64,000 bases of DNA. It comes from Neoechinorhynchus agilis (Eukaryota; Animalia; Acanthocephala). The stretch lies in NCBI GenBank assembly GCA_051530055.1, contig CM121342.1, positions 10,431,480 to 10,495,479 on the forward strand. Direction: 5' to 3'. The translations under genes were made by a program, and so were the position numbers. Below are positions 10,286-50,540 of this stretch, in pieces; within the stretch, counting starts at the first letter, position 1, and each line of letters starts with the position of its first letter. The notes under the pieces were generated by a model that had not been told where the DNA came from, made no database searches, and saw nothing but the letters and a program-made list of their open reading frames with translations.

Positions 10286-13200
10286 CTAACGATTAACGCA
10301 GTTTCCAGCGACTATAACCTTTGGTCCATAGCAGGTACATCGTTTTCGCCTACATCTCATACCAAATCGCTCGCAGTCAAGGTTAACAATACATTTTCTG
10401 CTGCTAACAACGAATCGTGGAATGCAATGTCCTTGGTAGAGTTTAAATTCGCGCCTACATTTGCATTGATGCCTAATGCACTTTTTATGGGCGCCGTCAG
10501 CATGTTTAATACAATCGAGGTCGCGATAGCATTCGGCGCTGGGTCCTGTTCCACCAGATCCAGGAATGCAAACTCCACGATAAAATACGTCACCAGGTTT
10601 GCACACACATTTCCCTTGTTTGCAGATAAAGTTATTCTTGGAATCACAATCTCTGTTACGAAGACATTCCGGGGCAGATATACGGTTTTGACATTTTAGG
10701 TTTTCCGGCAGCTCTCTATTGGCACACTGACAACGACCAGCAATGCATTTGAATCCAAACGAAACTTTACATTGGCTATCGGAATTGCACAACTTTAAGT
10801 ATCCACCATCTATTTGTAACGAGATAATGCAACGATTAAAATGGAGAACTTGGCCTTCCAAGCATGGCTTCGATTTTGTCTCAACGCAGAACTTCTTTGC
10901 GAGACATTGATACTTTAACCAAAACAATATCCTGTCAAGGTTAATACAGGCACCGTTCCAAAACATTCCATTCGGACCACAAGTACATATTCCTCCAGAG
11001 CATTTCAAATTCAAATATTTATTACAATCTTCGTTTGTTCTGCAGCCCTCAAAGAAGCCACCAACCTGCAACTGTTTCTGGCATAGACCGTTCAAAAATT
11101 TCGAATTTCGATCGCATTGACACAGCCCCCAAAAGCATAAAAGTCCGAGTTTACGATCACAATCAGCATGAGAAACGCAGGCATGGAAGTATCGACTACC
11201 GATTACGCCAGTGGCAAGCTCACAATGGTTGCTCTTCTCAATGTATCCAACAGCGCAGCTGCAATGATTGTGCATGCATAAAAGATTATTGTTAATGTTG
11301 CAATCGACGTTCCTCTGGCAAGGACTTCCCAATGAACCTGTAGATTTATATGATGGTGCAACACAAAAAAAGCCAAAAGTGCCCATAAGAAAGTTATCCT
11401 GGCAAATACAGCGACCGCATTGCAGATCGCAAACCATGCCATTGTCATTACTGCATATATATGAGGCCCTGCAATCGTAGTCTTAAAATTGAAACCAAAA
11501 TAAAAGAAATATAGAATGCAAAACTGTAAAACCTCTTCGGACACATTCTAAATGTCTCCAATATGTCGCCTCCGGACATCTGCATTTCCCATCAACACAT
11601 TTCAAAAACGACCGTTTCTCGCATTGAGCATTACTTCTACACGGCTCAAGGAACGATCCATTACCATCACTTCCTGGATTATAGTGAGTATAGAAAAAGT
11701 GAAGAGAAAAATAACAAACCAGAGTGTTCAAAACATCTAACCATATTCGATTTCTACGACATCTGCATTTCCCATTTCGGCAAACTAGCCCTTGTATCCA
11801 CTTGCATTGCGAATTGCTATTACACGGCAATAGTAATCCTTCCACAGACTCTTCCTCTAAAAATATGTTGCATTAATAGCTCTATCGAACAATTTATGCC
11901 CGTCACAAGAGAACTGCATCTTCAAGCTTAAATTTCTCACCTCCGATGGAAACGCATTGACCGGATTTCCAAACATCATCGTCCCGGCAAAGACAGTGAC
12001 CTCGAATACAGAACAATCCGATACTTTTGTTACACTCGGAGGACGACGAACATGGCTTCAAGAGACCGCCACTTGATGAATCGTCTTAAATACAATGGGA
12101 GGCATTTATAAATGTACGATTTACTGATTTTAGTTACCATCTATGGTACAATAGAATCCATTCCATTTGCTATGCTTCGCGCATTTGCAGCGTCCAAGTA
12201 TGCAAGTTAGACCAACCATTTGGTTGCAATGTTCTGGTACATTGCACCCCTTGTTTATCGATCCTTCCTCAAGAGAACCTTTGATTTTCGTTTTGAACAG
12301 TCGGAAACGAAAAATTTCACATTCACCTTCTAACGAGTTACATCTGGAATCCTTCCAATATTTATCCTCGGGGCAAACACAAAATCCGTTTTGGCAGGTC
12401 AGTCCGCTGGCTGTATCGCATTGAATATCGATATTACATGGCTTTAAAGCACCACCGCTGCCTTTAAGAACAGTCATTACTATGGACTTTATGACCAATT
12501 TTAATGTACGAACCGTCGTATGGTACACAGCGATATATACTCCAGTAACTCTTGGGCTTACAGACACATTTTCGACCTCGGCAAACAAGACCGGCAAGTT
12601 TGTTGCATTGTTTGTTTGTTCGACACGGTTCGCGCACACCCCCTGATCCTTCTTCTAGGAGTGAAGTTTTAATTTGATTTAGGTAGCAGAAAGAAGTAAT
12701 CGATATTATCTTTCAATAATACTCTTAGATCGCATAAATACATTAAAATCAATGCCGTATTACATATGACCGATTAAAAACAATCAATCACATCGTACCT
12801 TCATTTTCAATACATTTATGATCTCGCCATTGATATAACCGTGGACACCTGCACTTTCCGTCAACGCATCGCAATCCGGATTTTGTTCGGCACTGCGATG
12901 TATCCGTACAAGGAGTAAGGAGTGTTCCTCCAGCATTATCCTCGTTATCTATGTAAAATTGACTTATTATACGGACCGTGTTTAGTCGCTTCACGGTGAT
13001 ACCTTTAACTTTGATACACCTTCCGCTGAACCATATTCGATTTCTACGACATCTGCATTTCCCATTTCGGCAAACGAGCCCTTGTATCCACCTGCATTGC
13101 GAATTGTTGTTACACGGCAATAGTAATCCTCCCATGGACTCTTCCTCTAAAAATATGTTGCATTAATAGATCTATCGAAGAATTTATGCCCGTCACAAGA

Positions 13201-16200
13201 GAACTGCATCTTCAAGCTTAAATTTCTCACCTCCGATGGAAACGCATTGACCGGATTTCCAAACATCATCGTCCCGGCAAAGACAGTGACCTCGAATACA
13301 GAACAATCCGATACTTTTGTTACACTCGGAGGACGACGAACATGGCTTCAAGAGACCGCCACTTGATGAATCGTCTTAAATATAATGGGAGGCATTTATA
13401 AATGTACGATTTACTGATTTTAGTTACCATCTATGGTACAATAGAATCCATTCCATTTGCTATGCTTAGCGCATTTGCAGCGTCCAAGTATGCAAGTTAG
13501 ACCAACCATTTGGTTGCAATGTTCTGGTACATTGCACCCCTTGTTTATCGATCCTTCCTCAAGAGAACCTTAGATTTTCGTTTTAAACAGTCGGAAACGA
13601 AAAAATTTCACATTCACCTTCTAACGAGTTACATCTGGAATCCTTCCAATATTTATCTTCGGGGCAAACACAAAATCCGTTTTGGCAGGTCAGTCCGCTG
13701 GCTGTATCGCATTGAATATCGATATTACATGGCTTTAAAGTACCACCGCTGCCTTTAAGAACAGTCATTACTATGGACTTTATGACCAATTTTAATGTAC
13801 GAACCGTCGTATGGTACACAGCGATATATACTCCAGTAACTCTTGGGCTTACAGACACATTTTCGTCCTCGGCAAACAAGACCGGCAAGTTTGTTGCATT
13901 GTTTGTTTGTTCGACACGGTTCGAGCACACCTCCTGATCCTTCTTCTAGGAGTGAAGTTTTAATTTGATTTAGGTAGCAGAAAGAAGTAATCGATATTAT
14001 CTTTCAATCATACTCTTAGATCGCATAAATACATTAAAATCAATGCCGTGCTACATATGACCGATTGGAAACAATCAATCACATCGTACCTTCATTTTCA
14101 ATACATTTATGATCTCGCCATTGATATAACCGTGGACATCTGCACTTTCCGTCAACGCATCGCAATCCGGATTTTGTTCGGCACTGCGATGTATCCGTAC
14201 AAGGAGTAAGGAGTGTTCCTCCAGCATTCTCCTCGTTATCTATGGAAAATTGACTTATTATACGGACCGTGTTTAGTCGCTTCACGGTGATACCTTTAAC
14301 TTTGATACACCTTCCGCTGAACCATATTCGATTTCTACGACATCTGCATTTCCCATTTCGGCAAACGAGCCCTTGTATATACCTGCATTGCGAATTGCTA
14401 TTACACGGCAATAGTAATCCTTCCATAGACTCTTCCTCTAAAAATATGTTGCATTATTAGATCTATCGAAGAATTTATGCCCGTCACAAGAGAACTGCAT
14501 CTTCAAGCTTAAATTTCTCACCTCCGATGGAAACGCATTGACCGGATTTCCAAACATCATCGTCCCGGCAAAGACAATGATTTCGAATACAGAACAATCC
14601 GACACTTTTGTTACACTCGGAGGACGACGAACATGGCTTCAAGAGACCGCCACTTGATGAATCGTCTTAAATACAAAGGGAGGCATTTATAAATGTACGA
14701 TTTACTGATTTTAGTTACCATCTATGGTACAATAGAATCCATTCCATTTGCTATGCTTAGCGCATTTGCAGCGTCCAAGTATGCAAGTTAGACCAACCAT
14801 TTGGTTGCAATGTTCTGGTACATTGCACCCCTTGTTTATCAATCCTTCCTCAAGAGAACCTTTGATTTTCGTTTTGAACAGTCGGAAACGAAAAAATTTC
14901 ACATTCACCTTCTAACGAGTTACATCTGGAATCCTTCCAATATTTATCCTCGGGGCAAACACAAAATCCGTTTTGGCAGGTCAGTCCGCTGGCTGTATCG
15001 CATTGAATATCGATATTACATGGCTTTAAAGCACCACCGCTGCCTTTAAGAACAGTCATTACTATGGACTTTATGGCCAATTTTAATGTACGAACCGTCG
15101 TATGGTACACAGCGATATATACTCCAGTAACTCTTGGGCTTACAGACACATTTTCGTCCTCGGCAAACAAGACCGGCAAGTTTGTTGCATTGTTTGTTTG
15201 TTCGACACGGTTCGCGCACACCCCCTGATCCTTCTTCTAGGAGTGAAGTTTTAATTTGATTTAGGTAGAAGAAAGAAGTAATCGATATTATCTTTCAATC
15301 ATACTCTTAGATCGCATAAATACATTAAAATCAATGCCGTGTTACATATGACCGATTGAAAACAATCAATCACATCGTACCTTCATTTTCAATACATTTA
15401 TGATCTCGCCATTGATATAACCGTGGACACCTGCACTTTCCGTCAACGCATCGCACTCCGGATTTTGTTCGGCACTGCGATGTATCCGTACAAGGAGTAA
15501 GGAGTGTTCCTCCAGCATTCTCCTCGTTATCTATGGAAAATTGACTTGATATACGGACCGTGTTTAGTCGCTTCACGGTGATACCTTTAACTTTGATACA
15601 CCTTCCGCTGAACCATATTCGATTTCTACGACATCTGCATTTCCCATTTCGGCAAACTAGCCCTTGTATCCACTTGCATTGCGAATTGCTATTACACGGC
15701 AATAGTAATCCTCCCATGGACTCTTCCTCTAAAAATATGTTGCATTAATAGATCTATCGAAGAATTTATGCCCGTCACAAGAGAACTACATCTTCAAGCT
15801 TAAATTTCTCACCTCCGCAGGAAACGCATTGACCGGATTTCCAAACATCATCGTCCCGGCAAAGACAGTGACCTCGAATACAGAACAATCCGATACTTTT
15901 GTTACACTCGGAGGACGACGAACATGGTTTCAAGAGACCGCCACTTGATGAATCGTCTTAAATACAATGGGAGGCATTTATAAATGTACGATTTACTGAT
16001 TTTAGTTACCATCTATGGTACAATAGAATCCATTCCATTTGCTATGATTCGCGCATTTGCAGCGTCCAAGTATGCAAGTTAGACCAACCATTTGGTTGCA
16101 ATGTTCTGGTACATTGCACCCCTTGTTTATCGATCCTTCCCCAAGAGAACCTTTGATTTTCGTTTTAAACAGAGGAAACGAAAAAATTTCACATTCACCT

Positions 16201-19200
16201 TCTAACGAGTAACATCTGGAATCCTTCCAATATTTATCCTCGGGGCAAACACAAAATCCGTTTTGGCAGGTCAGTCCGCTGGCTGTATCGCATTGAATAT
16301 CGATATTACATGGCTTTAAAGCACCACCGCTGCCTTTAAGAACAGTCATTACTATGGACTTTATGACCAATTTTAATGTACGAACCGTCGTATTGTACAC
16401 AACGATATATACTCCAGTAACTCTTGGGCTTACAGACACATTTTCGTCCTCGGCAAACAAGACCGGCAAGTTTGTTGCATTGTTTGTTTGTTCGACACGA
16501 TTCGAGCACACCTCCTGATCCTTCTTCTAGGAGTGAAGTTTTAATTTGATTTAGGTAGAAGAAAGAAGTAATCGATATTATCTTTCAATCATACTCTTAG
16601 ATCGCATAAATACATTAAAATCAATTCCGTGATACATATGACCGATTGAAAACAATCAATCACATCGTACCTTCATTTTCAATACATTTATGATCTCGCC
16701 ATTGATATAACCGTGGACACCTGCACTTTCCGTCAACGCATCGCAATCCGGATTTTGTTCGGCACTGCGATGTATCCGTACAAGGAGTAAGGAGTGTTCC
16801 TCCAGCATTCTCCTCGTTATCTATGGAAAATTGACTTATTATACGGACCGTGTTTAGTCGCTTCACGGTGATACCTTTAACTTTGATACACCTTCCGCTG
16901 AACCATATTCGATTTCTACGACATCTGCATTTCCCATTTCGGCAAACTAGCCCTTGTATCCACTTGCATTGCGAATTGCTATTACACGGCAATAGTAATC
17001 CTCCCATGGACTCTTCCTCTAAAAATATGTTGCATTAATAGATCTATCGAAGAATTTATGCCCGTCACAAGAGAACTGCATCTTCAAGCTTAAATTTCTC
17101 ACCTCCGATGGACACGCATTGACCGGATTTCCAAACATCATCGTCCCGGCAAGACAATGATTTCGAATACAGAACAATCCGACACTTTTGTTACACTCGG
17201 AGGACGACGAACATGGCTTCAAGAGACCGCCACTTGATGAATCGTCTTAAATACAAAGGGAGGCATTTATAAATGTACGATTTACTGATTTTAGTTACCA
17301 TCTATGGTACAATAGAATCCATTCCATTTGCTATGCTTCGCGCATTTGCAGCGTCCAAGTATGCAAGTTAGACCAACCATTTGGTTGCAATGTTCTGGTA
17401 CATTGCACCCCTTGTTTATCGATCCTTCCTCAAGAGAACCTTTGATTTTCGTTTTGAACAGTCGGAAACGAAAAAATTTCACATTCACCTTCTAACGAGT
17501 TACATCTGGAATCCTTCCAATATTTATCCTCGGGGCAAACACAAAATCCGTTTTGGCAGGCCAGTCCGCTGGCTGTATCGCATTGAATATCGATATTACA
17601 TGGCTTTAAAGCACCACCGCTGCCTTTAAGAACAGTCATTACTATGGACTTTATGACCAATTTTAATGTACGAACCGTCGTATGGTACACAGCGATATAT
17701 ACTCCAGTAACTCTTGGGCTTACAGACACATTTTCGTCCTCGGCAAACAAGACCGGCAAGTTTGTTGCATTGTTTGTTTGTTCGACACGGTTCGCGCACA
17801 CCCCCTGATCCTTCTTCTAGGAGTGAAGTTTTAATTTGATTTAGGTAGAAGAAGAGTAATCGATATTATCTTTCAATCATACTCTTAGATCGCATAAATA
17901 CATTAAAATCAATGCCGTGCTACATATGACCGATTGAAAACAATCAATCACATCGTACCTTCATTTTCAATACATTTATGATCTCGCCATTGATATAACC
18001 GTGGACACCTGCACTTTCCGTCAACGCATCGCAATCCGGATTTTTGTTCGGCACTGCGATGTATCCGTACAGGAAGTAAGGAGTGTTCCTCCAGCATTCT
18101 CCTCGTTATCTATGTAAAATTGACTTATTATACGGACCGTGTTTAGTCGCTTCACGGTGATACCTTTAACTTTGATACACCTTCCGCTGAACCATATTCG
18201 ATTTCTACGACACCTGCATTTCCCATTTCGGCAAACGAGCCCTTGTATCCACCTGCATTGCGAATTGCTATTACACGGCAATAGTAATCCTTCCATGGAC
18301 TCTTCCTCTAAAAATATGTTGCATTAATAGATCTATCGAAGAATTTATGCCCGTCACAAGAGAACTGCATCTTCAAGCTTAAATTTCTCACCTCCGCAGG
18401 AAACGCATTGACCGGATTTCCAAACATCATCGTCCACGCAAAGACAGTGACCTCCAATACAGAACAATCCGACACTTTTGTTACACTCGGAGGACGACGA
18501 ACATGGCTTCAAGAGACCGCCACTTGATGAATCGTCTTAAATACAAAGGGAGGCATTTATAAATGTACGATTTACTGATTTTAGTTACCATCTATGGTAC
18601 AATAGAATCCATTCCATTTGCTATGCTTCGCGCATTTGCAGCGTCCAAGTATGCAAGTTAGACCAACCATTTGGTTGCAATGTTCTGGTACATTGCACCC
18701 CTTGTTTATCGATCCTTCCTCAAGAGAACCTTTGATTTTCGTTTTGAACAGTCGGAAACGAAAAAAAAAATTTCACATTCACCTTCTAACAGGTTACATC
18801 TGGAATCCTTCCAATATTTATCCTCGGGGCAAACACAAAATCCGTTTTGGCAGGCCAGTCCACTGGCTGTATCGCATTGAATATCGATATTACATGGCTT
18901 TAAAGCACCACCGCTGCCTTTAAGAACAGTCATTACTATGGACTTTATGACCAATTTTAATGTACGAACCGTCGTATGGTACACAGCGATATATACTCCA
19001 GTAACTCTTGGGCTTACAGACACATTTTCGTCCTCGGCAAACAAGACCGGCAAGTTTGTTGCATTGTTTGTTTGTTCGACACGGTTCGCGCACACCCCCT
19101 GATCCTTCTTCTAGGAGTGAAGTTTTAATTTGATTTAGGTAGAAGAAAGAAGTAATCGATATTATCTTTCAATCATACTCTTAGATCGCATAAATACATT

Positions 19201-20870
19201 AAAATCAATGCCGTGTTACATATGACCGATTGAAAACAATCAATCACATCGTACCTTCATTTTCAATACATTTATGATCTCGCCATTGATATAACCGTGG
19301 ACACCTGCACTTTCCGTCAACGCATCGCAATCCGGATTTTGTTCGGCACTGCGATGTATCCGTACAAGGAGTAAGGAGTGTTCCTCCAGCATTCTCCTCG
19401 TTATCTATGTAAAATTGACTTATTATACGGACCGTGTTTAGTCGCTTCACGGTGATACCTTTAACTTTGATACACCTCCGCTGAACCATATTCGATTTCT
19501 ACGACACCTGCATTTTCCATTTCGGCAAACGAGCCCTTGTATCCACCTGCATTGCGAATTGCTATTACACGGCAATAGTAATCCTCCCATGGACTCTTCC
19601 TCTAAAAATATGTTGCATTAATAGATCTATCAAAGAATTTATGCCCGTCACAAGAGAACTACATCTTAAAGCTTAAATTTCTCACCTCCGATGGAAACGC
19701 ATTGACCAGATTTCCAAACATCATCGTCCCGGCAAAGACAGTGACCTCGAATACAGAACAATCCGATACTTTTGTTACACTCGGAGGACGACGAACATGG
19801 TTTCAAGAGACCGCCACTTGATGAATCGTCTTAAATACAATGGGAGGCATTTATAAATGTACGATTTACTGATTTTAGTTACCATCTATGGTACAATAGA
19901 ATCCATTCCATTTGCTATGCTTAGCGCATTTGCAGCGTCCAAGTATGCAAGTTAGACCAACCATTTGGTTGCAATGTTCTGGTACATTGCACCCCTTGTT
20001 TATCGATCCTTCCTCAAGAGAACCTTTGATTTTCGTTTTGAACAGTCGGAAACGAAAAATTTCACATTCACCTTCTAACGAGTTACATCTGGAATCCTTC
20101 CAATATTTATCCTCGGGGCAAACACAAAATCCGTTTTGGCAGGTCAGTCCGCTGGCTGTATCGCATTGAATATCGATATTACATGGCTTTAAAGTACCAC
20201 CGCTGCCTTTAAGAACAGTCATTACTATGGACTTTATGACCAATTTTAATGTACGAACCGTCGTATGGTACACAGCGATATATACTCCAGTAACTCTTGG
20301 GCTTACAGACACATTTTCGTCCTCGGCAAACAAGACCGGCAAGTTTGTTGCATTGTTTGTTTGTTCGACACGGTTCGAGCACACCTCCTGATCCTTCTTC
20401 TAAAATTCGAATAAAGTTTCTTTGTTTGTCACCACTTATTGCGGATTTCGGTGTTATTTTTGGGTTAATTTTTAAATGCATTCTATTAACTGTTTTTGAA
20501 ATTAGAGATATGCCCTTGTTTTATTTCGCTAAAATATTTTTTACCTTGAGATATCTCCTTCTTACCTGTGCATTTGTGCTTTGTCCACTCGAATCCGTCT
20601 TTGCATGCACATATGCCATAGCGGCATTGCAATCCTTTTTTCGCATCACAATCTAAGTTACTGTAGCACTGACACGGGGACACATTCCCGAAAACATCGA
20701 CCGACGTTGCTGTTTTTTCGATTTTTCCTATTATATTTCATCATTTGGGTGGTTGCTCGATATTCCTTTACCTCCGTTCACATGCTCATTAAGGTAGCAA
20801 AGTAATAACAAAATATGTTGTGCTCTAAAACTCCGATATTGTAGCGATTTACACAAAAATGTCTGAGAAT
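10286..20870 (-). CDS. Giant multi-exon cysteine-rich repeat protein, paralogue 1 (EB-like 6-Cys modules, probably secreted)
   Basis: Hydrophobic segment HILLLLCYL, a 44-nt intron (20728-20771), a first PCQC module, ~42 single-module exons, then a ~1.2-kb terminal exon (10286-~11480). Module consensus is GG.L.PC-x5-C-x4-GL.C-x4-C.C-x5-W-x4-C. All six intron types in the array are phase 1 GT-AG. Start codon not resolved; no C-terminal TM segment. Confidence 0.8.
10542..11192 (-). repeat. 651-bp tract near-identical to 36471-37121
   Basis: Constant offset of 25929. The translations YFHACVSHADC...GSGGTGP are identical apart from one V/A change, while the flanking coding sequence is divergent. 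Confidence 0.92.
11739..20402. repeat. Tandem array 1: ~6.7 units of ~1290 bp, each with six exons and six introns
   Basis: Equivalent positions recur at 12130, ~13421, 14711, 16002, 17291, ~18582 and 19875. Units differ only by scattered SNPs and 1-bp or homopolymer indels. Confidence 0.97.
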
Positions 20871-21668
20871 ATACCTCAATTGAAATGGTTTCATTGGTAG
20901 CTAAGCATAAAAGATTGCCGTTTTTGTTTATAACTCAACATTCGGTTGTAAATTATGGACCTTATGTTCCACTCTTTTACCTTCTGATGCTTTGTGCACC
21001 AAGAGTTTCGCATTTGCAGCTGTATCACCCGAAAAGCAATAAATTCTATCTTGTCAATTCATTCTGGATCCTAAAAGTACCTCAAGTTTTAACTGTTTAG
21101 ATATTTCTGTAATGTTTATGGTCCGAAGCTTTGCAAACAATAAATTTCATTTCTGCAATTTTATGGGAGCCTTTTTTTAAAAAAGAGATTGTTTATGTTC
21201 GTGGTGATATTGATTGTCCAACTGATTCTTCGACAATAAAACCAGCCATATTCCGATATGATTTTGGATTCCGCCTACTTTAATTACATAAGAATCGCGA
21301 GGATATCCCCCTATTTTCAATTTCCCGACGATACTTTCCTATATCCACGCAAATCGAGTGGATGAGATCAGAAAAGCTCGTTTGAAAATAAGAAGTGATC
21401 GCAGAAATTTTATGCCTCATCGGTTGATTCCAATGTGGTTGTCCTCATGACACGTTCGGTTTACAAAAAGGAGAGTGCTTACTATGCCTTACGTTGAACG
21501 TTTAAACCAAGACGTCCAGGAACGAAATCTAACAATTGCCATTTTCGTTAATAACGTTGAAGTGTATGTGTGGATCTTGACTAATCAACATTGGATTTCG
21601 AGAGTCGTTGCTATAATTTGAATCATTCACAATGAACATATCATCCACACATACCGTCACTACTTGGT

Positions 21669-23020
<1,352 letters not shown>

Positions 23021-23324: not shown

Positions 23325-23786
23325 TGTGACATACGTCACATGCGTTAAATGTGACCATTCGTCACGTCCGTTACAAGGTTGTGTGTGGTTGATATAAGTG
23401 CGTTTTTGGTTTGGTAGTTGTGCGTTGATCAATAAAATACACTATTCGATACGGTATGCAGGCAGATCAATCGCAGTGGGCCCAGTGGCCGTGTGGTGTG
23501 CGCGTTCATAATGCGCTTGATATGTCGCTGGTTCAACGCCACCGGTCGCTGGGTTCCACGGGTGTGCGAGGCTGCTGGAAGGGGTGGGTCAGGTTTTGAG
23601 ATCGCCCATCGGCCCCAAAGGGGGTTGGCCCTGTTCCTTCGAGTGCGGCTGAGCGCCTCCGTTGTATGCAAGTTAGTCGAAAAAGACTCAAAAAGGAATA
23701 TAGACGAAAAGAAGATGTCATAGACAACAAAGTGTATGCGGCCTTGATAATAAATAAATAAATAATCGCAGTATGAGAACTCGACA
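23325..23786 (+). repeat. 5' LTR of Gypsy A, interrupted by a SINE
   Basis: Matches the 170-bp 3' LTR (32499-32668) once 23478-23763 and one TSD copy are removed. Confidence 0.88.
23478..23763 (+). mobile_element. tRNA-derived SINE (286 bp)
   Basis: 9-bp TSD aatcgcagt (23469-23477 and 23764-23772). A-box-like TGGCCGTGTGG and B-box-like GGTTCAACGCC are 33 nt apart. Anticodon-like arm GCGCG-TTCATAA-TGCGC; (ATAA)n tail. Confidence 0.8.
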
Positions 23787-34170: not shown

Positions 34171-34202
34171 TTAATCACAAACTACGCCACTTTTCTTTTG
34201 AG

Positions 34203-34210: not shown

Positions 34211-34259
34211 CGGCTACTGCGGCACGATGTTGTTCGCGTTTACATTTTCGAGCGAGATA

Positions 34260-35725: not shown

Positions 35726-36031
35726 GGATGGATTGGTACTGTAGTGCTAACGACGCAATGTGGATTCAATTTTTGTTCTTAGTTTATGGCTTACGATAGT
35801 TGAGGTAAACGTATTATAATTTGAAAAATATTTCAGAGGTACTTTTGAAACCCGATCATTTAAAGCTTCACTTACTTGTTCTAATTTTATGTAGTTTTAA
35901 AGGTGGAACATTTTGTCCTTCTACAAAACGTTTGTTAAATGTTTTTGAATAATTTTCGTCGTCTAGATCGCTATGTCAGAGATCGATTTATTGAGATCTC
36001 AAGATGGATAGTAGTATAATATTCCGTATAC

Positions 36032-39000: not shown

Positions 39001-42000
39001 TTAAAAGTACATGAAAATGTCGCATGTCTTTGAAAGGCTGAACAATATCGCCAAGAGGTATACACCTTCTAAAAGCACGCAACGACCGGATTTCCAAAAC
39101 CGGTCCTTTCCACAAAGACATAGCCCATTCTCACAACGCAAGCCAATGAGATGGTTACACTTGGAATGTCGAGAACACGATTTCAGTATACCTCCACTCA
39201 ACGATTCGTCTATGAATGTTCTCTAAATTCAATTCAACAAAATATATGGTTATACCATCAACAGTGCAAAAAGATCCGTTCCATTTGGACCCGTTGACAC
39301 ATCCGCAGCGTCCTCTTATGCATTTTAAGCCCAACAGCTGATTACACCGTTTGTCACTTGTGCATCCTTTGTTTATCGTTAATTGTTCAACAGCACCTAT
39401 AACGCATTTTTGTGCAAATCAAGTCTAGACCATTCTGATGTTAAACATCATCCAGGGATCTACACCTTTGGTTTTTCAAGTATTTATTGTCAGGGCAAAT
39501 GCAAAGGCCGAAACGGCATTAAAGTCCGAAAATCTTGTCACACTGGCAACCAGATTCACAAAATTTTAGTATGCCATGACCTTCTAAAAACCGAGAACTA
39601 AAACTTTCAAGCATATTGTTCCAATCATATGTTGACGAAAATTAGTAGGGCTCACAACGGTACACAAGCCAGTACATTTTCGGCTTACAGATGCATCGTC
39701 CGTCTCGACAAGACCAGCGAATTCTTTGCAATCAGTATGTAACTTACAAGATCCAAGTATACCACCAAACCCTGGGTCCAAAGAAGCTACACGAGTTACG
39801 CACGCAAAAATAAAAATACCGCGACAATCGCTCCGAAACGACAAACTTCTCAAATTCAGGAATATGTAGCAGAAATGCAATTAAAAATAACGTACGGAAC
39901 GATTCAATGAGGTCAAGAAAATCACTCACTATTTTTAGGGCTGCATTTATGCTTGCGCCAACGTTGCAGTGGTGGGCAACGGCATTTATCGTTACGGCAA
40001 CGCAATCCAGAATAAGCATTACATTGCTTGGATGACTCACATGAAGTCAGAAATCCACCACCAATATCAGAACCGGTTTCTATTTGGAAAAATGTAATTT
40101 CTAATTTTTCACAATGCTAATCAATCGCAAACCAGGATATTTAACACATCTTCCTTCGAACCAAATTCGATTTTGACGACATCTACACTTTCCATCAGAG
40201 CACTGAAGGCCGTAAATTCGATTGCACTGTGAATCGTTGTTGCATGGCAGCAACACACCCTCAGAGGATTCCTCTGCATGAAACGTTTTTCATGAATTCA
40301 ATTAAAAGATAGAGATTACCTTTCAAGAAGATACAACGACCACGTTTCCATATCTTATCAGGGCGACATTTGCATCGACCATATACACAATAAAGTCCGA
40401 TGTTTTGGTTACATTCGAAGTTTCGAATGCACTGTTTCAATAGTCCGTCACCAAGCGACTCGTCTGAAAACCATCAGCGCATAGAAAAACGTTCAATATG
40501 AATCAATCAAACCGTCTATAGTACAGTACGACCCATTCCATTTGCTTCTTCCAACGCACTTGCATCGTCTTTCAATACAGCTTAACCCGATCGATTGTTT
40601 ACAGTGCTTTGGAAGTAAACATTCTTTGTTTACGGTTCCTTCTTCTAATCCACCTATGAAAATTCGTGCCAAAAAGTAAATGACAGAACATTTGATAGAA
40701 CCTTCATACGAAACACAGTTATAATCCTTCCAGATTTTATCTTCGGAGCAAACACAAAGTCCATTGCGACAGAACAATCCGGCAGATGTGTCGCATTGGG
40801 TATTAGAGACGCAAGGCCTCAGTAATCCGTTTTCGTCTAATGAAAACCGCCATGACCAGAGCAAATTATCCAACTGCATTTCATACCTGAATGGGAAACA
40901 CAACGATACTTTTTCCAATAAGTCCCCGGTTCACACATGCAGCGTCCGTTCTGACAGGTAAGATGAGCAATAACGTTACAATCGTTATTACGTTGACATG
41001 GACTAAGAATTCCATTGAAATCTCCACCTAAGGATAAAGACAAAATTTATGAATAGTACCACTTTAATGAAAACGTTTATGTGCGAAGGCAAACACAAAA
41101 TTCAATTTATCAATGGCATAATCCTTACCTCTTTTCGGCAGACATCGGTTCCGCTTCCAGTAATGAAAATGTGGACACCGGCATTTCTCATCTATACACT
41201 TAAGACCGGAATTGTGCCCACATTCAATGTCACTGAAGCATTGATCGAGTAAATTACCGGTTGTACCAAGGTCACTTTCTGCGAATGAATAATTGAAAAA
41301 AGTAGATTCGTATATTGAAGAAATGCTGTTCAGACCTTGATATCTTATACAACGATCTGCTAGCCATATGTGGTTTCGACGGCATATACACTTTCCCCGA
41401 TGACAAACAAGTCCGTGGAACGAGTTACATTGCACAGTATTTCGACATGGGAGCAATAAACCTCCATTCAATTCATCACCTAGAATTAAAAGTACATGAA
41501 AATGTCGCATGTCAAAAACATATAGGACACTTCATGCCTTCGAGAGGAGAGCAACGTCCCGATTTCCATATATAATTCTTAGGACAAACACAGCGGCCGA
41601 AAAGACAGTACAATCCAACTTTAACATTGCAGTTAAGGTTCGATGAACAGGGCTTTAGAAGTCCGCCGGCCGACGATTCGTCTATAAATCGAAGTTTTTT
41701 TTAATTATACCAATGACAGTTCAGAATAGTACCGTCAATTGTACAGTAGAAGCCGTTCCACTTACTGTGTCGGACGCACTTACACCGACCTCGGATGCAT
41801 GTAAGTCCCACTACTTGATTACATTCTTCAGGTTTTAGACATTTCTGATCGAAACTTCCATCTTCCAAAGCACCTTCGAAATTTTCCACGATGGTGAGGT
41901 GTCTATAAACGTTTTCCCAAACCTTCCAGGGATAGACATTTGTTCTGTTTCCAATACTTATCGTCCGGGCATACACAAATTCCATGGTTACAAATAAGTC

Positions 42001-45000
42001 CAATAATCGCGTTGCATTGTTCATTAAACTGGCATGGTTTCAACACATCTCCCTCACCTCCTTTTCGAGGATAAATAAGCGATGTAACATTTTTTGTGAA
42101 CCTCACCTTCGTAAGGGACGCATCTATAAATGTTCCAGTAAGTCCTAGGTTTACAGATGCAACGGCCGGCTCTACACTTGAGACCAGCAATAGTTTTGCA
42201 ATCACTGTTAGCAATACAAGGCTGCAGTACACCCGCCGATCCTTCGTCTGGATGAAAAGCATGTAAGAGATTGTCAACGTAATTCAATATTGGCTTCTAT
42301 CAAACGAATGTTCGCCAATTCGCATAAAAAAGTAAGTGCTTTTTTTTGCGAACTGCATTCGACCTTCGTGGCTATTAATTTTACTAACGTTTCTTTGGAA
42401 CGCATCTATTTCCTTGCCAATGATGGAAAGGTACGCAACGGCATTTTCCATTAATGCACTTAAGCCCAAGTCCCATTTTACAGTGCGTTGAATTCACGCA
42501 GGGCGACAGAAGTGTGCCACCACCTCCTCCTTCGGTATCTAAAAACAATTTCACATCATTGAGATGACCAATACTTCCTCTAATGATTTACCTGGGTATT
42601 TCACACACCGACCGTTGTACCACACGTAATTTTTACGGCATCTACACTTTCCTTCGATGCAGCGCAAGCCGTGGATCCAGTTGCAATGTGAGTTTTCGGT
42701 ACATGGTCCGAGAAGTTCTCCCGACGATCCATCATCTTGCATCATAAAGGGTTTGTGTTAGAGTCCATATTTCAGTTTTGAAACATGGCACAAAATTGTC
42801 TACGATCAAAATATTCATACCTTCGAGAGGAGAGCAACGTCCCGATTTCCATATATAATCCTTAGGACAAACACAGCGGCCGAAAAGACAGTACAATCCA
42901 ACTTTAACATTGCAGTTAAGGTTCGATGAACAGGGCTTTAGAAGTCCGCCGGCCGACGATTCGTCTATAAATCGAAGTTTTTTTTAATTATACCAATGAC
43001 AGTTCAGAATAGTACCGTCAATTGTACAGTAGAAGCCGTTCCACTTACTGTGTCGGACGCACTTACACCGACCTCGGATGCATGTAAGTCCCACTACTTG
43101 ATTACATTCTTCAGGTTTTAGACATTTCTGATCGAAACTTCCATCTTCCAAAGCACCTTCGAAATTTTCCACGATGGTGAGGTGTCTATAAACGTTTTCC
43201 CAAACCTTCCAGGGATAGACATTTGTTCTGTTTCCAATACTTATCGTCCGGGCATACACAAATTCCATGGTTACAAATAAGTCCAATAATCGCGTTGCAT
43301 TGTTCATTAAACTGGCATGGTTTCAACACATCTCCCTCACCTCCTTTTCGAGGATAAATAAGCGATGTAACATTTTTTGTGAACCTCACCTTCGTAAGGG
43401 ACGCATCTATAAATGTTCCAGTAAGTCCTAGGTTTACAGATGCAACGGCCGGCTCTACACTTGAGACCAGCAATAGTTTTGCAATCACTGTTAGCAATAC
43501 AAGGCTGCAGTACACCCGCCGATCCTTCGTCTGGATGAAAAGCATGTAAGAGATTGTCAACGTAATTCAATATTGGCTTCTATAAAACGAATGTTCGCCA
43601 ATTCGCATGAAAAGTAAGTGCTTTTTTTTGCGAACTGCATTCGACCTTCGTGGCTATTAATTTTACTAACGTTTCTTTGGAACGCATCTATTTCCTTGCC
43701 AATGATGGAAAGGTACGCAACGGCATTTTCCATTAATGCACTTAAGCCCAAGTCCCATTTTACAGTGCGTTGAATTCACGCAGGGCGACAGAAGTGTGCC
43801 ACCACCTCCTCCTTCGGTATCTAAAAACAATTTCACATCATTGAGATGACCAATACTTCCTCTAATGATTTACCTGGGTATTTCACACACCGACCGTTGT
43901 ACCACACGTAATTTTTTACGGCATCTACACTTTCCTTCGATGCAGCGCAAGCCGTGGATCCAGTTGCAATGTGAGTTTTCGGTACATGGTCCGAGAAGTT
44001 CTCCCGACGATCCATCATCTTGCATCATAAAGGGTTTGTGTTAGAGTCCATATTTCAGTTTTGAAACATGGCACAAAATTGTCTACGATCAAAATATTCA
44101 TACCTTCGAGAGGAGAGCAACGTCCCGATTTCCATATATAATCCTTAGGACAAACACAGCGGCCGAAAAGACAGTACAATCCAACTTTAACATTGCAGTT
44201 AAGGTTCGATGAACAGGGCTTTAGAAGTCCGCCGGCCGACGATTCGTCTATAAATCGAAGTTTTTTTTAATTATACCAATGACAGTTCAGAATAGTACCG
44301 TCAATTGTACAGTAGAAGCCGTTCCACTTACTGTGTCGGGCGCACTTACACCGACCTCGGATGCATGTAAGTCCCACTACTTGATTACATTCTTCAGGTT
44401 TTAGACATTTCTGATCGAAACTTCCATCTTCCAAAGCACCTTCGAAATTTTCCACGATGGTGAGGTGTCTATAAACGTTTTCCCAAACCTTCCAGGGATA
44501 GACATTTGTTCTGTTTCCAATACTTATCGTCCGGGCATACACAAATTCCATGGTTACAAATAAGTCCAATAATCGCGTTGCATTGTTCATTAAACTGGCA
44601 TGGTTTCAACACATCTCCCTCACCTCCTTTTCGAGGATAAATAAGCGATGTAACATTTTTGTGAACCTCACCTTCGTAAGGGACGCATCTATAAATGTTC
44701 CAGTAAGTCCTAGGTTTACAGATGCAACGGCCGGCTCTACACTTGAGACCAGCAATAGTTTTGCAATCACTGTTAGCAATACAAGGCTGCAGTACACCCG
44801 CCGATCCTTCGTCTGGATGAAAAGCATGTAAGAGATTGTCAACGTAATTCAATATTGGCTTCTATAAAACGAATGTTCGCCAATTCGCATGAAAAGTAAG
44901 TGCTTTTTTTTGCGAACTGCATTCGACCTTCGTGGCTATTAATTTTACTAACGTTTCCTTTGGAACGCATCTATTTCCTTGCCAATGATGGAAAGGTACG

Positions 45001-48000
45001 CAACGGCATTTTCCATTAATGCACTTAAGCCCAAGTCCCATTTTACAGTGCGTTGAGTTCACGCAGGGCGACAGAAGTGTGCCACCACCTCCTCCTTCGG
45101 TATCTAAAAACAATTTCACATCATTGAGATGACCAATACTTCCTCTAATGATTTACCTGGGTATTTCACACACCGACCGTTGTACCACACGTAATTTTTA
45201 CGGCATCTACACTTCCCTTCGATGCAGCGCAAGCCGTGGATCCAGTTGCAATGTGAGTTTTCGGTACATGGTCCGAGAAGTTCTCCCGACGATCCATCAT
45301 CTTGCATCATAAAGGGTTTGTGTTAGAGTCCATATTTCAGTTTTGAAACATGGCACAAAATTGTCTACCATCAAAATATTCATACCTTCGAGAGGAGAGC
45401 AACGTCCCGATTTCCATATATAATCCTTAGGACAAACACAGCGGCCGAAAAGACAGTACAATCCAACTTTAACATTGCAGTTAAGGTTCGATGAACAGGG
45501 CTTTAGAAGTCCGCCGGCCGACGATTCGTCTATAAATCGAAGTTTTTTTAATTATACCAATGACAGTTCAGAATAGTACCGTCAATTGTACAGTAGAAGC
45601 CGTTCCACTTACTGTGTCGGACGCACTTACACCGACCTCGGATGCATGTAAGTCCCACTACTTGATTACATTCTTCAGGTTTTAGACATTTCTGATCGAA
45701 ACTTCCATCTTCCAAAGCACCTTCGAAATTTTCCACGATGGTGAGGTGTCTATAAACGTTTTCCCAAACCTTCCAGGGATAGACATTTGTTCTGTTTCCA
45801 ATACTTATCGTCCGGGCATACACAAATTCCATGGTGACAAATAAGTCCAATAATCGCGTTGCATTGTTCATTAAACTGGCATGGTTTCAACACATCTCCC
45901 TCACCTCCTTTTCGAGGATAAATAAGCGATGTAACATTTTTGTGAACCTCACCTTCGTAAGGGACGCATCTATAAATGTTCCAGTAAGTCCTAGGTTTAC
46001 AGATGCAACGGCCGGCTCTACACTTGAGACCAGCAATAGTTTTGCAATCACTGTTAGCAATACAAGGCTGCAGTACACCCGCCGATCCTTCGTCTGGATG
46101 AAAAGCATGTAAGAGATTGTCAACGTAATTCAATATTGGCTTCTATAAAACGAATGTTCGCCAATTCGCATGAAAAGTAAGTGCTTTTTTTGCGAACTGC
46201 ATTCGACCTTCGTGGCTATTAATTTTACTAACGTTTCTTTGGAACGCATCTATTTCCTTGCCAATGATGGAAAGGTACGCAACGGCATTTTCCATTAATG
46301 CACTTAAGCCCAAGTCCCATTTTACAGTGCGTTGAGTTCACGCAGGGCGACAGAAGTGTGCCACCACCTCCTCCTTCGGTATCTAAAAACAATTTCACAT
46401 CATTGAGATGACCAATACTTCCTCTAATGATTTACCTGGGTATTTCACACACCGACCGTTGTACCACACGTAATTTTTACGGCATCTACACTTCCCTTCG
46501 ATGCAGCGCAAGCCGTGGATCCAGTTGCAATGTGAGTTTTCGGTACATGGTCCGAGAAGTTCTCCCGACGATCCATCATCTTGCATCATAAAGGGTTTGT
46601 GTTAGAGTCCATATTTCAGTTTTGAAACATGGCACAAAATTGTCTACGATCAAAATATTCATACCTTCGAGAGGAGAGCAACGTCCCGATTTCCATATAT
46701 AATCCTTAGGACAAACACAGCGGCCGAAAAGACAGTACAATCCAACTTTAACATTGCAGTTAAGGTTCGATGAACAGGGCTTTAGAAGTCCGCCGGCCGA
46801 CGATTCGTCTATAAATCGAAGTTTTTTTAATTATACCAATGACAGTTCAGAATAGTACCGTCAATTGTACAGTAGAAGCCGTTCCACTTACTGTGTCGGA
46901 CGCACTTACACCGACCTCGGATGCATGTAAGTCCCACTACTTGATTACATTCTTCAGGTTTTAGACATTTCTGATCGAAACTTCCATCTTCCAAAGCACC
47001 TTCGAAATTTTCCACGATGGTGAGGTGTCTATAAACGTTTTCCCAAACCTTCCAGGGATAGACATTTGTTCTGTTTCCAATACTTATCGTCCGGGCATAC
47101 ACAAATTCCATGGTGACAAATAAGTCCAATAATCGCGTTGCATTGTTCATTAAACTGGCATGGTTTCAACACATCTCCCTCACCTCCTTTTCGAGGATAA
47201 ATAAGCGATGTAACATTTTTGTGAACCTCACCTTCGTAAGGGACGCATCTATAAATGTTCCAGTAAGTCCTAGGTTTACAGATGCAACGGCCGGCTCTAC
47301 ACTTGAGACCAGCAATAGTTTTGCAATCACTGTTAGCAATACAAGGCTGCAGTACACCCGCCGATCCTTCGTCTGGATGAAAAGCATGTAAGAGATTGTC
47401 AACGTAATTCAATATTGGCTTCTATAAAACGAATGTTCGCCAATTCGCATGAAAAGTAAGTGCTTTTTTTGCGAACTGCATTCGACCTTCGTGGCTATTA
47501 ATTTTACTAACGTTTCTTTGGAACGCATCTATTTCCTTGCCAATGATGGAAAGGTACGCAACGGCATTTTCCATTAATGCACTTAAGCCCAAGTCCCATT
47601 TTACAGTGCGTTGAGTTCACGCAGGGCGACAGAAGTGTGCCACCACCTCCTCCTTCGGTATCTAAAAACAATTTCACATCATTGAGATGACCAATACTTC
47701 CTCTAATGATTTACCTGGGTATTTCACACACCGACCGTTGTACCACACGTAATTTTTACGGCATCTACACTTTCCTTCGATGCAGCGCAAGCCGTGGATC
47801 CAGTTGCAATGTGAGTTTTCGGTACATGGTCCGAGAAGTTCTCCCGACGATCCATCATCTTGCATCATAAAGGGTTTGTGTTAGAGTCCATATTTCAGTT
47901 TTGAAACATGGCACAAAATTGTCTAACCATCAAAATATTCATACCTTCGAGAGGAGAGCAACGTCCCGATTTCCATATATAATCCTTAGGACAAACACAG

Positions 48001-50540
48001 CGGCCGAAAAGACAGTACAATCCAACTTTAACATTGCAGTTAAGGTTCGATGAACAGGGCTTTAGAAGTCCGCCGGCCGACGATTCGTCTATAAATCGAA
48101 GTTTTTTTTAATTATACCAATGACAGTTCAGAATAGTACCGTCAATTGTACAGTAGAAGCCGTTCCACTTTACTGTGTCGGGCGCACTTACACCGACCTC
48201 GGATGCATGTAAGTCCCACTACTTGATTACATTCTTCAGGTTTTAGACATTTCTGATCGAAACTTCCATCTTCCAAAGCACCTTCGAAATTTTCCACGAT
48301 GGTGAGGTGTCTATAAACGTTTTCCCAAACCTTCCAGGGATAGACATTTGTTCTGTTTCCAATACTTATCGTCCGGGCATACACAAATTCCATGGTGACA
48401 AATAAGTCCAATAATCGCGTTGCATTGTTCATTAAACTGGCATGGTTTCAACACATCTCCCTCACCTCCTTTTCGAGGATAAATAAGCGATGTAACATTT
48501 TTGTGAACCTCACCTTCGTAAGGGACGCATCTATAAATGTTCCAGTAAGTCCTAGGTTTACAGATGCAACGGCCGCCTCTACACTTGAGACCAGCAATAG
48601 TTTTGCAATCACTGTTAGCAATACAAGGCTGCAGTACACCCGCCGATCCTTCGTCTGGATGAAAAGCATGTAAGAGATTGTCAACGTAATTCAATATTGG
48701 CTTCTATAAAACGAATGTTCGCCAATTCGCATGAAAAGTAAGTGCTTTTTTTTGCGAACTGCATTCGACCTTCGCGGCTATTAATTTTACTAACGTTTCT
48801 TTGGAACGCATCTATTTCCTTGCCAATGATGGAAAGGTACGCAACGGCATTTTCCATTAATGCACTTAAGCCCAAGTCCCATTTTACAGTGCGTTGAGTT
48901 CACGCAGGGCGACAGAAGTGTGCCACCACCTCCTCCTTTGGTATCTAAAAACAATTTCACATCATTGAGATGACCAATACTTCCTCTAATGATTTACCTG
49001 GGTATTTCACACACCGACCGTTGTACCACACGTAATTTTTACGGCATCTACACTTTCCCTTCGATGCAGCGCAAGCCGTGGATCCAGTTGCAATGTGAGT
49101 TTTCGGTACATGGTCCGAGAAGTTCTCCCGACGATCCATCATCTTGCATCATAAAGGGTTTGTGTTAGAGTCCATATTTCAGTTTTGAAACATGGCACAA
49201 AATTGTCTACGATCAAAATATTCATACCTTCGAGAGGAGAGCAACGTCCCGATTTCCAATATATAATCCTTAGGACAAACACAGCGGCCGAAAAGACAGT
49301 ACAATCCAACTTTAAAATTGCAGTTAAGGTTCGATGAACAGGGCTTTAGAAGTCCGCCGGCCGACGATTCGTCTATAAATCGAAGTTTTTTTAATTATAC
49401 CAATGACAGTTCAGAATAGTACCGTCAATTGTACAGTAGAAGCCGTTCCACTTACTGTGTCGGGCGCACTTACACCGACCTCGGATGCATGTAAGTCCCA
49501 CTACTTGATTACATTCTTCAGGTTTTAGACATTTCTGATCGAAACTTCCATCTTCCAAAGCACCTTCGAAATTTTCCACGATGGTGAGGTGTCTATAAAC
49601 GTTTTCCCAAACCTTCCAGGGATAGACATTTGTTCTGTTTCCAATACTTATCGTCCGGGCATACACAAATTCCACTGTGACAAATAAGTCCAATAATCGC
49701 GTTGCATTGTTCATTAAACTGGCATGGTTTCAACACATCTCCCTCACCTCCTTTTCGAGGATAAATAAGCGATGTAACATTTTTGTGAACCTCACCTTCG
49801 TAAGGGACGCATCTATAAATGTTCCAGTAAGTCCTAGGTTTACAGATGCAACGGCCGGCTCTACACTTGAGACCAGCAATAGTTTTGCAATCACTGTTAG
49901 CAATACAAGGCTGCAGTACACCCGCCGATCCTTCGTCTGGATGAAAAGCATGTAAGAGATTGTCAACGTAATTCAATATTGGCTTCTATAAAACGAATGT
50001 TCGCCAATTCGCATGAAAAGTAAGTGCTTTTTTTGCGAACTGCATTCGACCTTCGTGGCTATTAATTTTACTAACGTTTTTTGCAATAGTGCCCATTCCA
50101 TTTGTATTTTGCCTTGCATTTGCATTTATTTTTTCTGCATTGTAGGCCTAGACTTGTGCGACATTCTTGGTCTGCTGAGCATTTTGTGTTGTGCCCATGT
50201 TCTCCTTCCGTTTCTCCTTTTTTTGCTTATTTAAATATGTATACATTTTTTTCTTACCTATGCAGCGGTTTCGAAACCATTGAAATCCGTCCCTGCACGC
50301 ACACAATCCTTTTCGGCAGTACAAGCCCCTGAATATATCACAATCGTTACTCGTTTCGCATTGACACGGTATAATTGTTCCAAATATTTCAATATAGTTT
50401 TCTCTTTGGGATAGGTGACCTATTTTAAACTTTGCATTCGCTGCTTTTATTTGTTGTTTACCTCCAAAGATTTCTGCGATTAGTGAACATAGCAAAATTG
50501 CCCACGAGTTGCTAACGAAATTTGTTTGAAGGCAATTGAA
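36032..50540 (-). CDS. Giant multi-exon cysteine-rich repeat protein, paralogue 2 (may be partly pseudogenised)
   Basis: Hydrophobic WAILLCSLIAEIFG, a 42-nt intron (50420-50461), a PCQC module, ~60 single-module exons in repeating a-f order, then a terminal exon (36032-~37420). One module has a frameshift (~39707) and one a TAA (39519-39521). Start codon not resolved. Confidence 0.75.
36471..37121 (-). repeat. 651-bp tract near-identical to 10542-11192
   Basis: Partner of the tract in paralogue 1. Confidence 0.92.
37626..39028. repeat. 1.4-kb direct duplication, copy 1 (copy 2 at 40113-41513)
   Basis: Mirror ORFs 38006/40493 and 38350/40837 (offset 2487) have near-identical translations. 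Covers about seven modules. Confidence 0.93.
40113..41513. repeat. 1.4-kb direct duplication, copy 2
   Basis: Partner of 37626-39028. Confidence 0.93.
41530..50078. repeat. Tandem array 2: ~6.7 units of ~1282 bp, six exons each
   Basis: Equivalent positions at 41701, 42984, 44267, 45548, 46827, ~48109 and 49391. Units are almost identical to one another but clearly different from array 1 units. Confidence 0.97.

Follow-up and report, generated by a model that had tools for sequence, protein, structure and literature searches.

Two giant EB-repeat genes of an acanthocephalan share a six-module cycle and carry separately homogenised exon arrays

Repeated genes and satellites can be homogenised along their length. 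In spidroin and mucin genes, as in the higher-order repeats of alpha satellite, the repeats are near-identical within a gene and diverged between paralogues, and like monomers pair with like. Giant secreted proteins made of disulphide-rich modules have also been described, for instance Dumpy of Drosophila, a structural protein of the apical matrix with hundreds of such modules, a higher-order alternation, and near-identical repeat blocks. Among the EB-module proteins of nematodes and insects, we know of no six-type higher-order cycle and no homogenised exon array. The EB modules of nematodes are often accompanied by Kunitz inhibitor domains, and secretory tissue, such as the pharynx of Anisakis, is enriched in them (PMC5763927). 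Here, we describe two genes, named A and B below, found in a window of 64,000 nucleotides (the whole stretch of DNA analysed; positions 10,431,480 to 10,495,479 of CM121342.1, a 16.4-Mb chromosome) of Neoechinorhynchus agilis, an eoacanthocephalan parasite of mullets (fish). Both encode giant, putatively secreted proteins in which six types of EB modules follow one another in a constant order, and each carries its own array of near-identical six-module units. The two genes are undescribed, yet of known general kinds, i.e., EB-module secreted proteins and repeat genes under concerted evolution.

A regular-expression search of the window returned 113 six-cysteine modules, all on the minus strand and gathered in two clusters (10298-20668 and 36104-50360). 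They belong to two paralogues, as the original prediction made on this DNA had it; the two genes share one orientation, are separated by about 15 kb, and possess each its own start codon, putative signal peptide, and stop. That prediction had bounded the pair at 10286-50540; the lower bound is the stop of gene A and holds, whereas gene B starts at 50567. The two genes and their arrays are as follows (coordinates of the window):

10286..20894, minus strand: gene A, with putative signal peptide, cap module N1, seven hexamers (42 modules of types a to f), and a multi-module terminal exon
36032..50567, minus strand: gene B, with putative signal peptide, cap modules N1 and N2, ten hexamers (60 modules), and a terminal exon
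11739..20402, minus strand: array A, delimited using blastn with its unit consensus; 6.71 units of 1291 bp in 8664 bp
41531..50083, minus strand: array B, delimited using blastn with its unit consensus; 6.68 units of 1281 bp in 8553 bp

When all module slots are counted, damaged ones included, gene A has 1 + 42 + ~9 = ~52 EB modules and gene B 2 + 60 + ~10 = ~72, for proteins estimated at ~2400 and ~3400 residues, close to the ~2500 and ~3500 first proposed.

The identity of the modules was established using the Pfam EB profile (PF01683). The modules are about 45 residues long and follow the consensus GxxLxxC-x5-C-x4-GLxC-xxGxC-x-C-x5-W-x4-C, in which the six cysteines are invariant among 33 representative modules; the conserved tryptophan and the richness in lysine and arginine that had been announced are both seen, in the consensus and in the composition. 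With a gathering cut-off of 24.3 bits, the profile matches the spliced hexamer (78.7 bits), the two terminal exons (75.8 and 98.5 bits), and one module taken alone (29.3 bits). Searched singly, each of the 33 representative modules is an EB match (E <= 1, best 1e-07); the original prediction had not named the family beyond "EB-like". A full-length EB module has eight conserved cysteines, according to its Pfam description. Single modules always match at profile positions 21-52 of 52, and matches over the full profile (1-52) are confined to the terminal exons, where they span module borders. The modules of genes A and B are a short, six-cysteine variant of EB. Pfam detected no domain other than EB in the hexamer and both terminal exons, thus no Kunitz, inhibitor, or ZP domain. 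We also considered an EGF-like identity and rejected it: the corresponding Pfam matches are sporadic and weak (EGF_Teneurin in 6 of the 33 modules, best E 0.022; EGF_2 in two), and Foldseek comparison with the EGF domains of Pfs25 and Pfs28 gave E values of ~5-10, the likeness being limited to stacked beta-hairpins.

The fold of the module was modelled using AlphaFold. With an alignment of modules as input, the single module is predicted as a short turn followed by two beta-hairpins, at a predicted local distance difference test score (pLDDT) of 90. Modelling of the whole hexamer, run without alignment, reached a pLDDT of 57 and a predicted template modelling score of 0.21 and is uninformative on the packing between modules. 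The predicted fold of the module is a generic one, of the stacked-hairpin, disulphide-rich kind, and suggests no function. A sequence search of the PDB returned only chance matches to antibodies, i.e., no solved relative by sequence.

The modules of the hexamers fall into six types, a (..YRCVPY[DE]), b (..KYWK..C.SLE), c (..KWNGFYCTID), d, e, and f, and their order is exceptionless in the seven hexamers of gene A and the ten of gene B. We compared the types, at non-cysteine positions, between four sets of hexamers, i.e., array A, array B, and two older sets of gene B (B1 and B2). Modules of the same type are on average 46% identical between sets and modules of different types 26%, a difference that none of 20,000 label permutations reached. 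Moreover, when whole hexamers are aligned at all cyclic shifts, shift 0 gives 49.5% identity and the other shifts 31% at most. Hence, modules group by type across the genes and not by gene, and the shared six-module code stands as originally proposed. Type c is the most conserved (70-74% protein identity between sets) and type f the weakest, with 30% between the two arrays and 43-48% via an older gene-B copy (A versus B2). Between sets, the proportion of synonymous differences (pS) is ~0.8, i.e., saturated, and that of non-synonymous differences (pN) ~0.3. The four sets thus appear to be old and constrained, and the conserved type-specific residues show that the six types are not interchangeable. 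It had also been proposed that the hexamer is the functional unit. The types are under constraint; on the other hand, once six diverged types are present, recombination in register yields multiples of six and perpetuates the hexamer by itself, so that a six-module period is no proof of a functional unit.

Each of the two arrays is homogenised at the DNA level. A repeat search identified seven in-register copies per array, with a spacing of 1289-1294 bp for array A and of 1279-1283 bp for array B, which matches almost to the base the two ~8.6-kb arrays of ~6.7 units (~1290 and ~1282 bp) that had been anticipated. The unit of array A comprises six phase-1 exons (c, d, e, f, a, b in the coordinates of the consensus) and six introns of 52-144 nt, and array B runs from module a (49809-49907) through module d (41551-41649). 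Identity between units, introns included, amounts to 97.0-98.4% in array A and to 99.3-99.8% in array B. Comparison of one gene with the other gives the contrary picture: only pieces of exons can be aligned (65-78% DNA identity), with synonymous sites at saturation, and the introns show no alignment at all. Within the arrays, introns diverge by 1.3% in A and 0.2% in B, the same order as synonymous sites, which indicates that homogenisation acts on DNA, exons and introns alike; concerted evolution of each array, as first suggested, is thereby borne out. The remaining variation is not random with respect to coding. Each unit of array A has 11-21 substitutions of its own, the pN/pS ratio relative to the consensus is 0.44 in A (37 non-synonymous and 23 synonymous changes) and 0.48 in B, and the excess of synonymous changes in A is significant (p = 0.002). 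From these ratios and this excess, the arrays behave as coding sequence under constraint.

The exon organisation is as regular as the modules themselves. Throughout the arrays, each hexamer module is encoded by one exon; the donor lies four residues past the last cysteine (three past it in type c), is usually G|GT and always in phase 1, and the next exon completes the codon. The introns between modules measure 40-145 nt, and all those resolved are in phase 1. The ends of the genes comprise the following exons:

20772..20894, minus strand: gene A exons 1-2, putative signal peptide MKPFQLRAQHILLLLCYLNEHVNG, read from the DNA with inferred splice sites
20566..20727, minus strand: gene A exon 3, cap module N1 (..SPCQCYSNLDCDAKKGLQCRYGICACKDGFEWTKHKC), from the module list and splice analysis
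10286..11481, minus strand: gene A terminal exon, ~398 residues, ~9 contiguous EB modules, intron-less, stop at 10286-10288
50462..50567, minus strand: gene B exons 1-2, putative signal peptide MCNSWAILLCSLIAEIFG, read from the DNA with inferred splice sites
36032..37416, minus strand: gene B terminal exon, ~461 residues, ~10 contiguous EB modules, intron-less, including the segment 36468-37121 shared with gene A

In gene A, the ATG (20894-20892) opens an exon 1 of 20 nt (20894-20875), which is followed by a 50-nt intron and by an exon 2 of 53 nt (20824-20772) closing at the phase-1 donor G|GTAAAG. The layout of gene B is parallel, with an ATG at 50567-50565, an exon 1 that ends at 50563 (ATGTG|gtatga), a 51-nt intron, and an exon 2 of 50 nt (50511-50462) that also closes at a phase-1 donor. 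The N1 modules of the two genes are 41% identical, and the second cap, N2, exists in gene B only. Both N-termini are hydrophobic (MKPFQLRAQHILLLLCYL.. and MCNSWAILLCSLIA.., as joined across the predicted 50- and 51-nt introns) and both C-termini hydrophilic, the gene A protein ending in ..AGNCVNR without a hydrophobic tail. The hydrophobic N-terminal segment and the lack of a C-terminal anchor reported at the outset are therefore found in both genes, and they fit putatively secreted, unanchored proteins with a putative signal peptide split between two exons.

Outside of the arrays, gene B and the terminal exons retain traces of other events:

37462..41530, minus strand: older unhomogenised hexamers of gene B (hexamers 41447-37560), 20 modules, e f a b c d repeated 3.3 times
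37616..39028, minus strand: internal duplication of gene B, 1413 bp, 99.5% identical to 40104-41513
39400..39880, minus strand: two apparently dead exons of gene B, one a-type with a frameshift and one b-type with an in-frame TAA
10539..11192, minus strand: gene-conversion tract, gene A copy, 654 bp, 99.7% identical to gene B 36468-37121

The older hexamers keep the same a-f register, and their synonymous sites are saturated relative to both arrays. The offset of the internal duplication, 2488 bp, is that of 12 modules, i.e., two hexamers. As all resolved module exons are in phase 1-1, skipping of the dead exons would keep the reading frame. The edges of the 654-bp tract are sharp, its flanks being only ~50-60% identical, and it is the mark of a recent ectopic gene conversion between the terminal exons. 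With such a 99.7% identical tract, the paralogues are not fully isolated from each other.

These observations bear on the proposal that the two arrays were "amplified and homogenised independently". Separate homogenisation holds; full independence does not, in view of the 654-bp tract, and independent amplification is doubtful. Both arrays indeed begin with module a, straight after the cap modules, and both count nearly the same number of units, which is less easily reconciled with two unrelated bursts than with descent from a common array of about seven hexamers. Inheritance of the array, followed by separate homogenisation after the gene duplication, is therefore probable, as far as copy numbers that are themselves soft can tell. 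That the two lengths are nearly equal may be due to chance, to descent from a seven-hexamer array, or to selection for a given length.

We propose the following mechanism. The six-type cycle would be old and kept by type-specific constraint in all four hexamer lineages, and one 8.6-kb block per gene has been homogenised, introns included, likely by unequal crossing-over or gene conversion. Since different types are only ~26% identical and the intervening introns unrelated, only like module types could pair, and each event would move multiples of six modules, as seen in the six-module units and in the 12-module duplication. Homogenisation takes place within each gene, and ectopic conversion between the genes occurs in addition.

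The same architecture is found in a second acanthocephalan. When the public protein model ACOME3_007062, a fragment of gene A, was searched using HMMER against 1.84 billion representative proteins, a single strong match was obtained outside of N. agilis, the Pomphorhynchus laevis protein KAI0984588.1 (E = 3.5e-240), an uncharacterised hypothetical protein of 3746 residues (GJ496_007458). The next outside matches have E values of 1e-7 or weaker; they are unnamed metagenomic proteins and proteins of Brachionus, Gryllus, and Microplitis (~1e-7 to 1e-5 for these three). When the terminal exon and the hexamer served as queries in word-index protein searches, nothing but fragments from the N. agilis genome came back. 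Like the products of genes A and B, the P. laevis protein is composed only of EB modules with a six-module period. Its first ~18 modules are encoded by one exon each, with phase-1 introns four residues past the last cysteine (13 of the 13 resolvable junctions), and modules with KWNG (type c) and CxW (type e) stand at the same relative positions. Modules 1-12 make up two hexamers, with 30-62% identity between modules at equivalent places. The six cyclic shifts were scored against the types of N. agilis using BLOSUM62, and the register e-f-a-b-c-d came out far ahead of the others (229.8 versus 171.8 at most). The P. laevis gene also differs from genes A and B: it contains a 7.4-kb intron-less exon with ~45 modules where the terminal exons of A and B have 9-10, it has only ~2.5-3 hexamers and no near-identical array in that assembly, and one gene was found instead of a pair. 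The near-identical arrays may be specific to N. agilis or may have been collapsed in the P. laevis assembly.

We propose that genes A and B and GJ496_007458 form a group of acanthocephalan giant EB-repeat proteins, whose three members share the EB-only composition, the six-module period, the phase-1, one-module exons of the N-terminal part, and a long 3' exon that holds many modules without introns, with moderate support for the mapping of the types. With moderate confidence, the exon architecture and the six-module period would predate the split between Eoacanthocephala and Palaeacanthocephala. The annotated P. laevis protein starts with MFSDTRESYL.., without signal peptide, and its first module lies at position 11908 of the locus (WNNJ02001757.1). 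Its 5' end is probably mis-annotated or located further upstream (locus 10001-11900).

What these proteins do can be approached from their composition, with 12.6% cysteine, an isoelectric point of ~8.5, and one N-glycosylation sequon per hexamer. The module cores are mostly basic (net charge +3 to +9, types b and d being near neutral), and short acidic linkers rich in glycine and serine separate them. The products would therefore resemble extracellular beads on a string, rigid triple-disulphide modules being carried on short acidic linkers. By analogy with known modular matrix proteins, they would most likely contribute to the structure or matrix of some secreted material, the egg envelope, the surface coat, or the copulatory cement being candidates. 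Two other readings of the composition were rejected. A mucin-like protein does not fit the absence of proline/threonine/serine-rich stretches and the single sequon per hexamer, and a polyprotein of furin type does not fit linkers without conserved dibasic sites. We regard it as probable that the EB-module architecture, the evolutionary reading, and a function in a secreted structural matrix together explain these genes. The architecture and the evolutionary reading, taken separately, are held with high confidence, and the structural-matrix function, taken separately and drawn from architecture and composition, is put forward tentatively. A stronger version, in which the six-module cycle is a true structural unit of an extracellular material specific to acanthocephalans (e.g., a supramolecular repeat in the egg envelope or cement), with selection fixing the length of 6.7 units while recombination renews the units, is a rather speculative one that we consider improbable.

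Several observations weigh against this explanation. The assembly (GCA_051530055.1) is a 46-Mb MaSuRCA/Flye hybrid of Oxford Nanopore (ONT) R9.4 reads of at least 5 kb and Illumina reads, from DNA of mostly ~50 pooled worms, annotated using BRAKER with RNA-seq hints (PMC12690905). Copy number depends on this assembly and is consequently soft, and, in spite of the RNA-seq hints, the BRAKER models of these genes are mere fragments, of which one is in part translated in a wrong frame. All splice sites, those of the 5' exons included, were read from the DNA. Single-nucleotide indels affect about 8 of 82 array exons (three in A and ~5 in B), one of the older exons of gene B is frameshifted and another contains a stop, and, if these indels and this stop are real, full-length frames would need exon skipping. 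At its 3' edge, array A breaks off within an e module, the exon of which is truncated and of ambiguous splicing. As for P. laevis, the register that is best among cyclic shifts ranks only 28th of 720 over all possible orders, and the assignment of types by simple identity is weak for each module, with margins of 1-7%. Lastly, Foldseek comparison of the single-module model to the PDB found nothing below E = 3, the matches being the N-terminal region of Dkk4, the EGF domains of Pfs25 and Pfs28, and TNFR repeats.

These points have to be weighed together with four other explanations. The quality of the assembly raises the question of whether the near-identical arrays, their copy numbers, or the frameshifts are artefacts of hybrid assembly, as pooled worms, R9.4 reads, and a short-read polishing that is weak in repeats might produce. 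The nature of the indels agrees with this for the frameshifts: all eight exonic indels are single-base, six of them changing the length of homopolymer runs of 2-5 bases and two duplicating a single base, and they are probably residual ONT R9.4 consensus errors left where short-read polishing fails inside repeats. The arrays themselves are another matter. Each unit has its own substitutions with a coding-like synonymous excess, two separate arrays are regular, and the P. laevis orthologue independently shows hexamer repeats, from which we conclude that the arrays exist and that doubt is confined to the indels and to the precise number of copies; an artefactual origin is accordingly highly unlikely. 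The same damaged exons could also be read as decay, i.e., the genes would be pseudogenes and their arrays neutral repeated DNA, a reading to which about eight frameshifted array exons, the frameshift and stop in older gene B, the truncated module of array A, and a fragmentary public annotation lend some weight. However, pN is far below pS between the sets, and the ratio remains at 0.44 even among recent unit variants. The six cysteines are invariant in 33 modules, no unit has lost its splice sites, the start codons, putative signal peptides, and terminal exons show no damage, and the single-base indels, six of them typical of ONT homopolymer errors, are better blamed on sequencing. Of the explanations weighed here, we judge pseudogene decay the least credible.

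The history of the arrays leaves more room for discussion. Instead of an ongoing concerted evolution of an inherited array, one hexamer might have been amplified recently in each gene by two separate bursts. Within-array divergence is very low and unequal (~2% in A and ~0.4% in B), as bursts of different ages would give, old unhomogenised hexamers adjoin the array in gene B, and the recent 12-module duplication proves that new duplications arise. Nevertheless, two arrays that both start at module a after the caps, with 6.7 units each, would be an unlikely coincidence, although this argument is soft as long as copy numbers are uncertain, while their likeness would follow from a seven-hexamer array already present before the gene was duplicated. 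We consider the two bursts unlikely, yet the most serious of the four alternatives. Regarding function, the products might not be structural at all. They could be multivalent binders or inhibitors at the host interface (protease inhibitors or traps for host proteins) or precursors of cationic six-cysteine peptides, in line with the frequent association of nematode EB modules with Kunitz domains and secretory tissue (PMC5763927). The proteins themselves offer some resemblance to a precursor, small cationic cores with three disulphides separated by acidic spacers being a trait of some peptide polyproteins. This is opposed by the lack of any Kunitz or other inhibitor domain in Pfam, by linkers without a conserved dibasic or other processing site, by types b and d, which are not cationic, and by the absence of a significant structural match to an inhibitor or defensin in Foldseek. 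Such non-structural roles seem to us distinctly improbable next to that of a matrix component.

In the public annotation, genes A and B are broken up into five or more short models, which lie at 10286-13509, at 19875-20619, and in parts of 36032-50567, and most of arrays A and B is left without annotation. The NCBI models on gene A are fragments (ACOME3_007062, 568 residues; ACOME3_007063, 192 residues), as are those on gene B (ACOME3_007068, 215 residues; ACOME3_007071, 152 residues; and one of 901 residues). The junctions of ACOME3_007062 are those that we predict wherever the two overlap, and ACOME3_007063 is out of frame in part, with one module mistranslated. Expression studies based on this annotation will therefore miss or miscount genes A and B.

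The surroundings of the two genes are rich in repeats. About 0.8 kb upstream of the start codon of gene A lies a perfect (ATA)73 microsatellite (21672-21891), the only run reported by Tandem Repeats Finder, which is blind to periods above 500 bp. Between the two genes stands a retroelement of Ty3/gypsy type (24153-28516), with a pol open reading frame of 789 residues (25720-28089, plus strand) containing reverse transcriptase, RNase H, and integrase domains, and with flanking direct repeats of 119 bp (24153-24271 and 28398-28516) that are 97.5% identical. Gene B is bracketed by an inverted duplication of 3.6 kb, 99.4% identical (31819-35439, plus strand, and 56698-60301, minus strand), and, nearer to the gene, by a second inverted pair (35459-35731 and 50975-51248, 95.6% identical). 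Each 3.6-kb arm contains an intron-less uS5 (RPS2) reading frame of 288 residues (34227-35093, plus strand, and 57027-57893, minus strand), the two proteins being identical. The 3.6-kb duplication may be genuine, in which case gene B could be flipped by it, or may have arisen in the assembly. Dispersed repeats of ~155 bp with 96% identity (23325-23477, 32499-32654, and 59466-59621) and pieces of 70-400 bp with 77-89% identity (6739-8121 versus 51586-53191 and 60800-61124) are also found around the genes and are probably fragments of mobile elements. Finally, a reading frame of 219 residues (30962-31621, minus strand) has a weak, sub-threshold match to SPC25, a subunit of the signal peptidase (E 0.0097, 16 bits for a cut-off of 24.3).

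Acanthocephalans are pests of aquaculture, and hardly anything is known of the molecules that build their egg envelopes, surface coat, and cement. Neither the N. agilis genes nor their P. laevis orthologue is mentioned in the literature and supplements searched, which included genome, transcriptome, and proteome studies of both species, and no expression or proteomic data on genes A and B were found there. They would represent an undescribed family of giant secreted proteins common to two acanthocephalan classes. A single locus moreover displays hexamers of old age next to two arrays homogenised each on its own, together with a 12-module duplication, a conversion tract between paralogues, and probable dead exons tolerated by the phase-1 design.

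Compared with the systems already described, genes A and B resemble each of them in part. The nematode and insect EB proteins (e.g., "prion-like-(Q/N-rich) domain-bearing protein 25") belong to the same profile family and are secreted multi-EB proteins too; unlike the products of A and B, they measure a few hundred to ~1100 residues, use the full eight-cysteine module, and often carry Kunitz or other domains. With Dumpy, the likeness is one of architecture only, and homology is not shown, the Pfam DPY family giving a single weak match (E 0.03). Unlike Dumpy, the A and B proteins have neither a ZP domain nor a transmembrane anchor, and a structural role is for them an inference. The avian eggshell-membrane protein CREMP is also structural, with many tandem disulphide-rich modules, flexible linkers, and ~10% cysteine, in a material of egg envelopes; it is a vertebrate protein whose two-disulphide modules are unrelated in sequence, and the analogy is functional only. 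As for the mode of evolution, the repeats of spidroins and mucins lie in single large exons of low complexity, whereas the N. agilis unit comprises six exons and six introns and encodes folded, Cys-knot-like modules, which makes it a clean case of concerted evolution acting on such a composite unit. Alpha satellite is non-coding and the N. agilis arrays are coding, and both are homogenised as units of several monomers.

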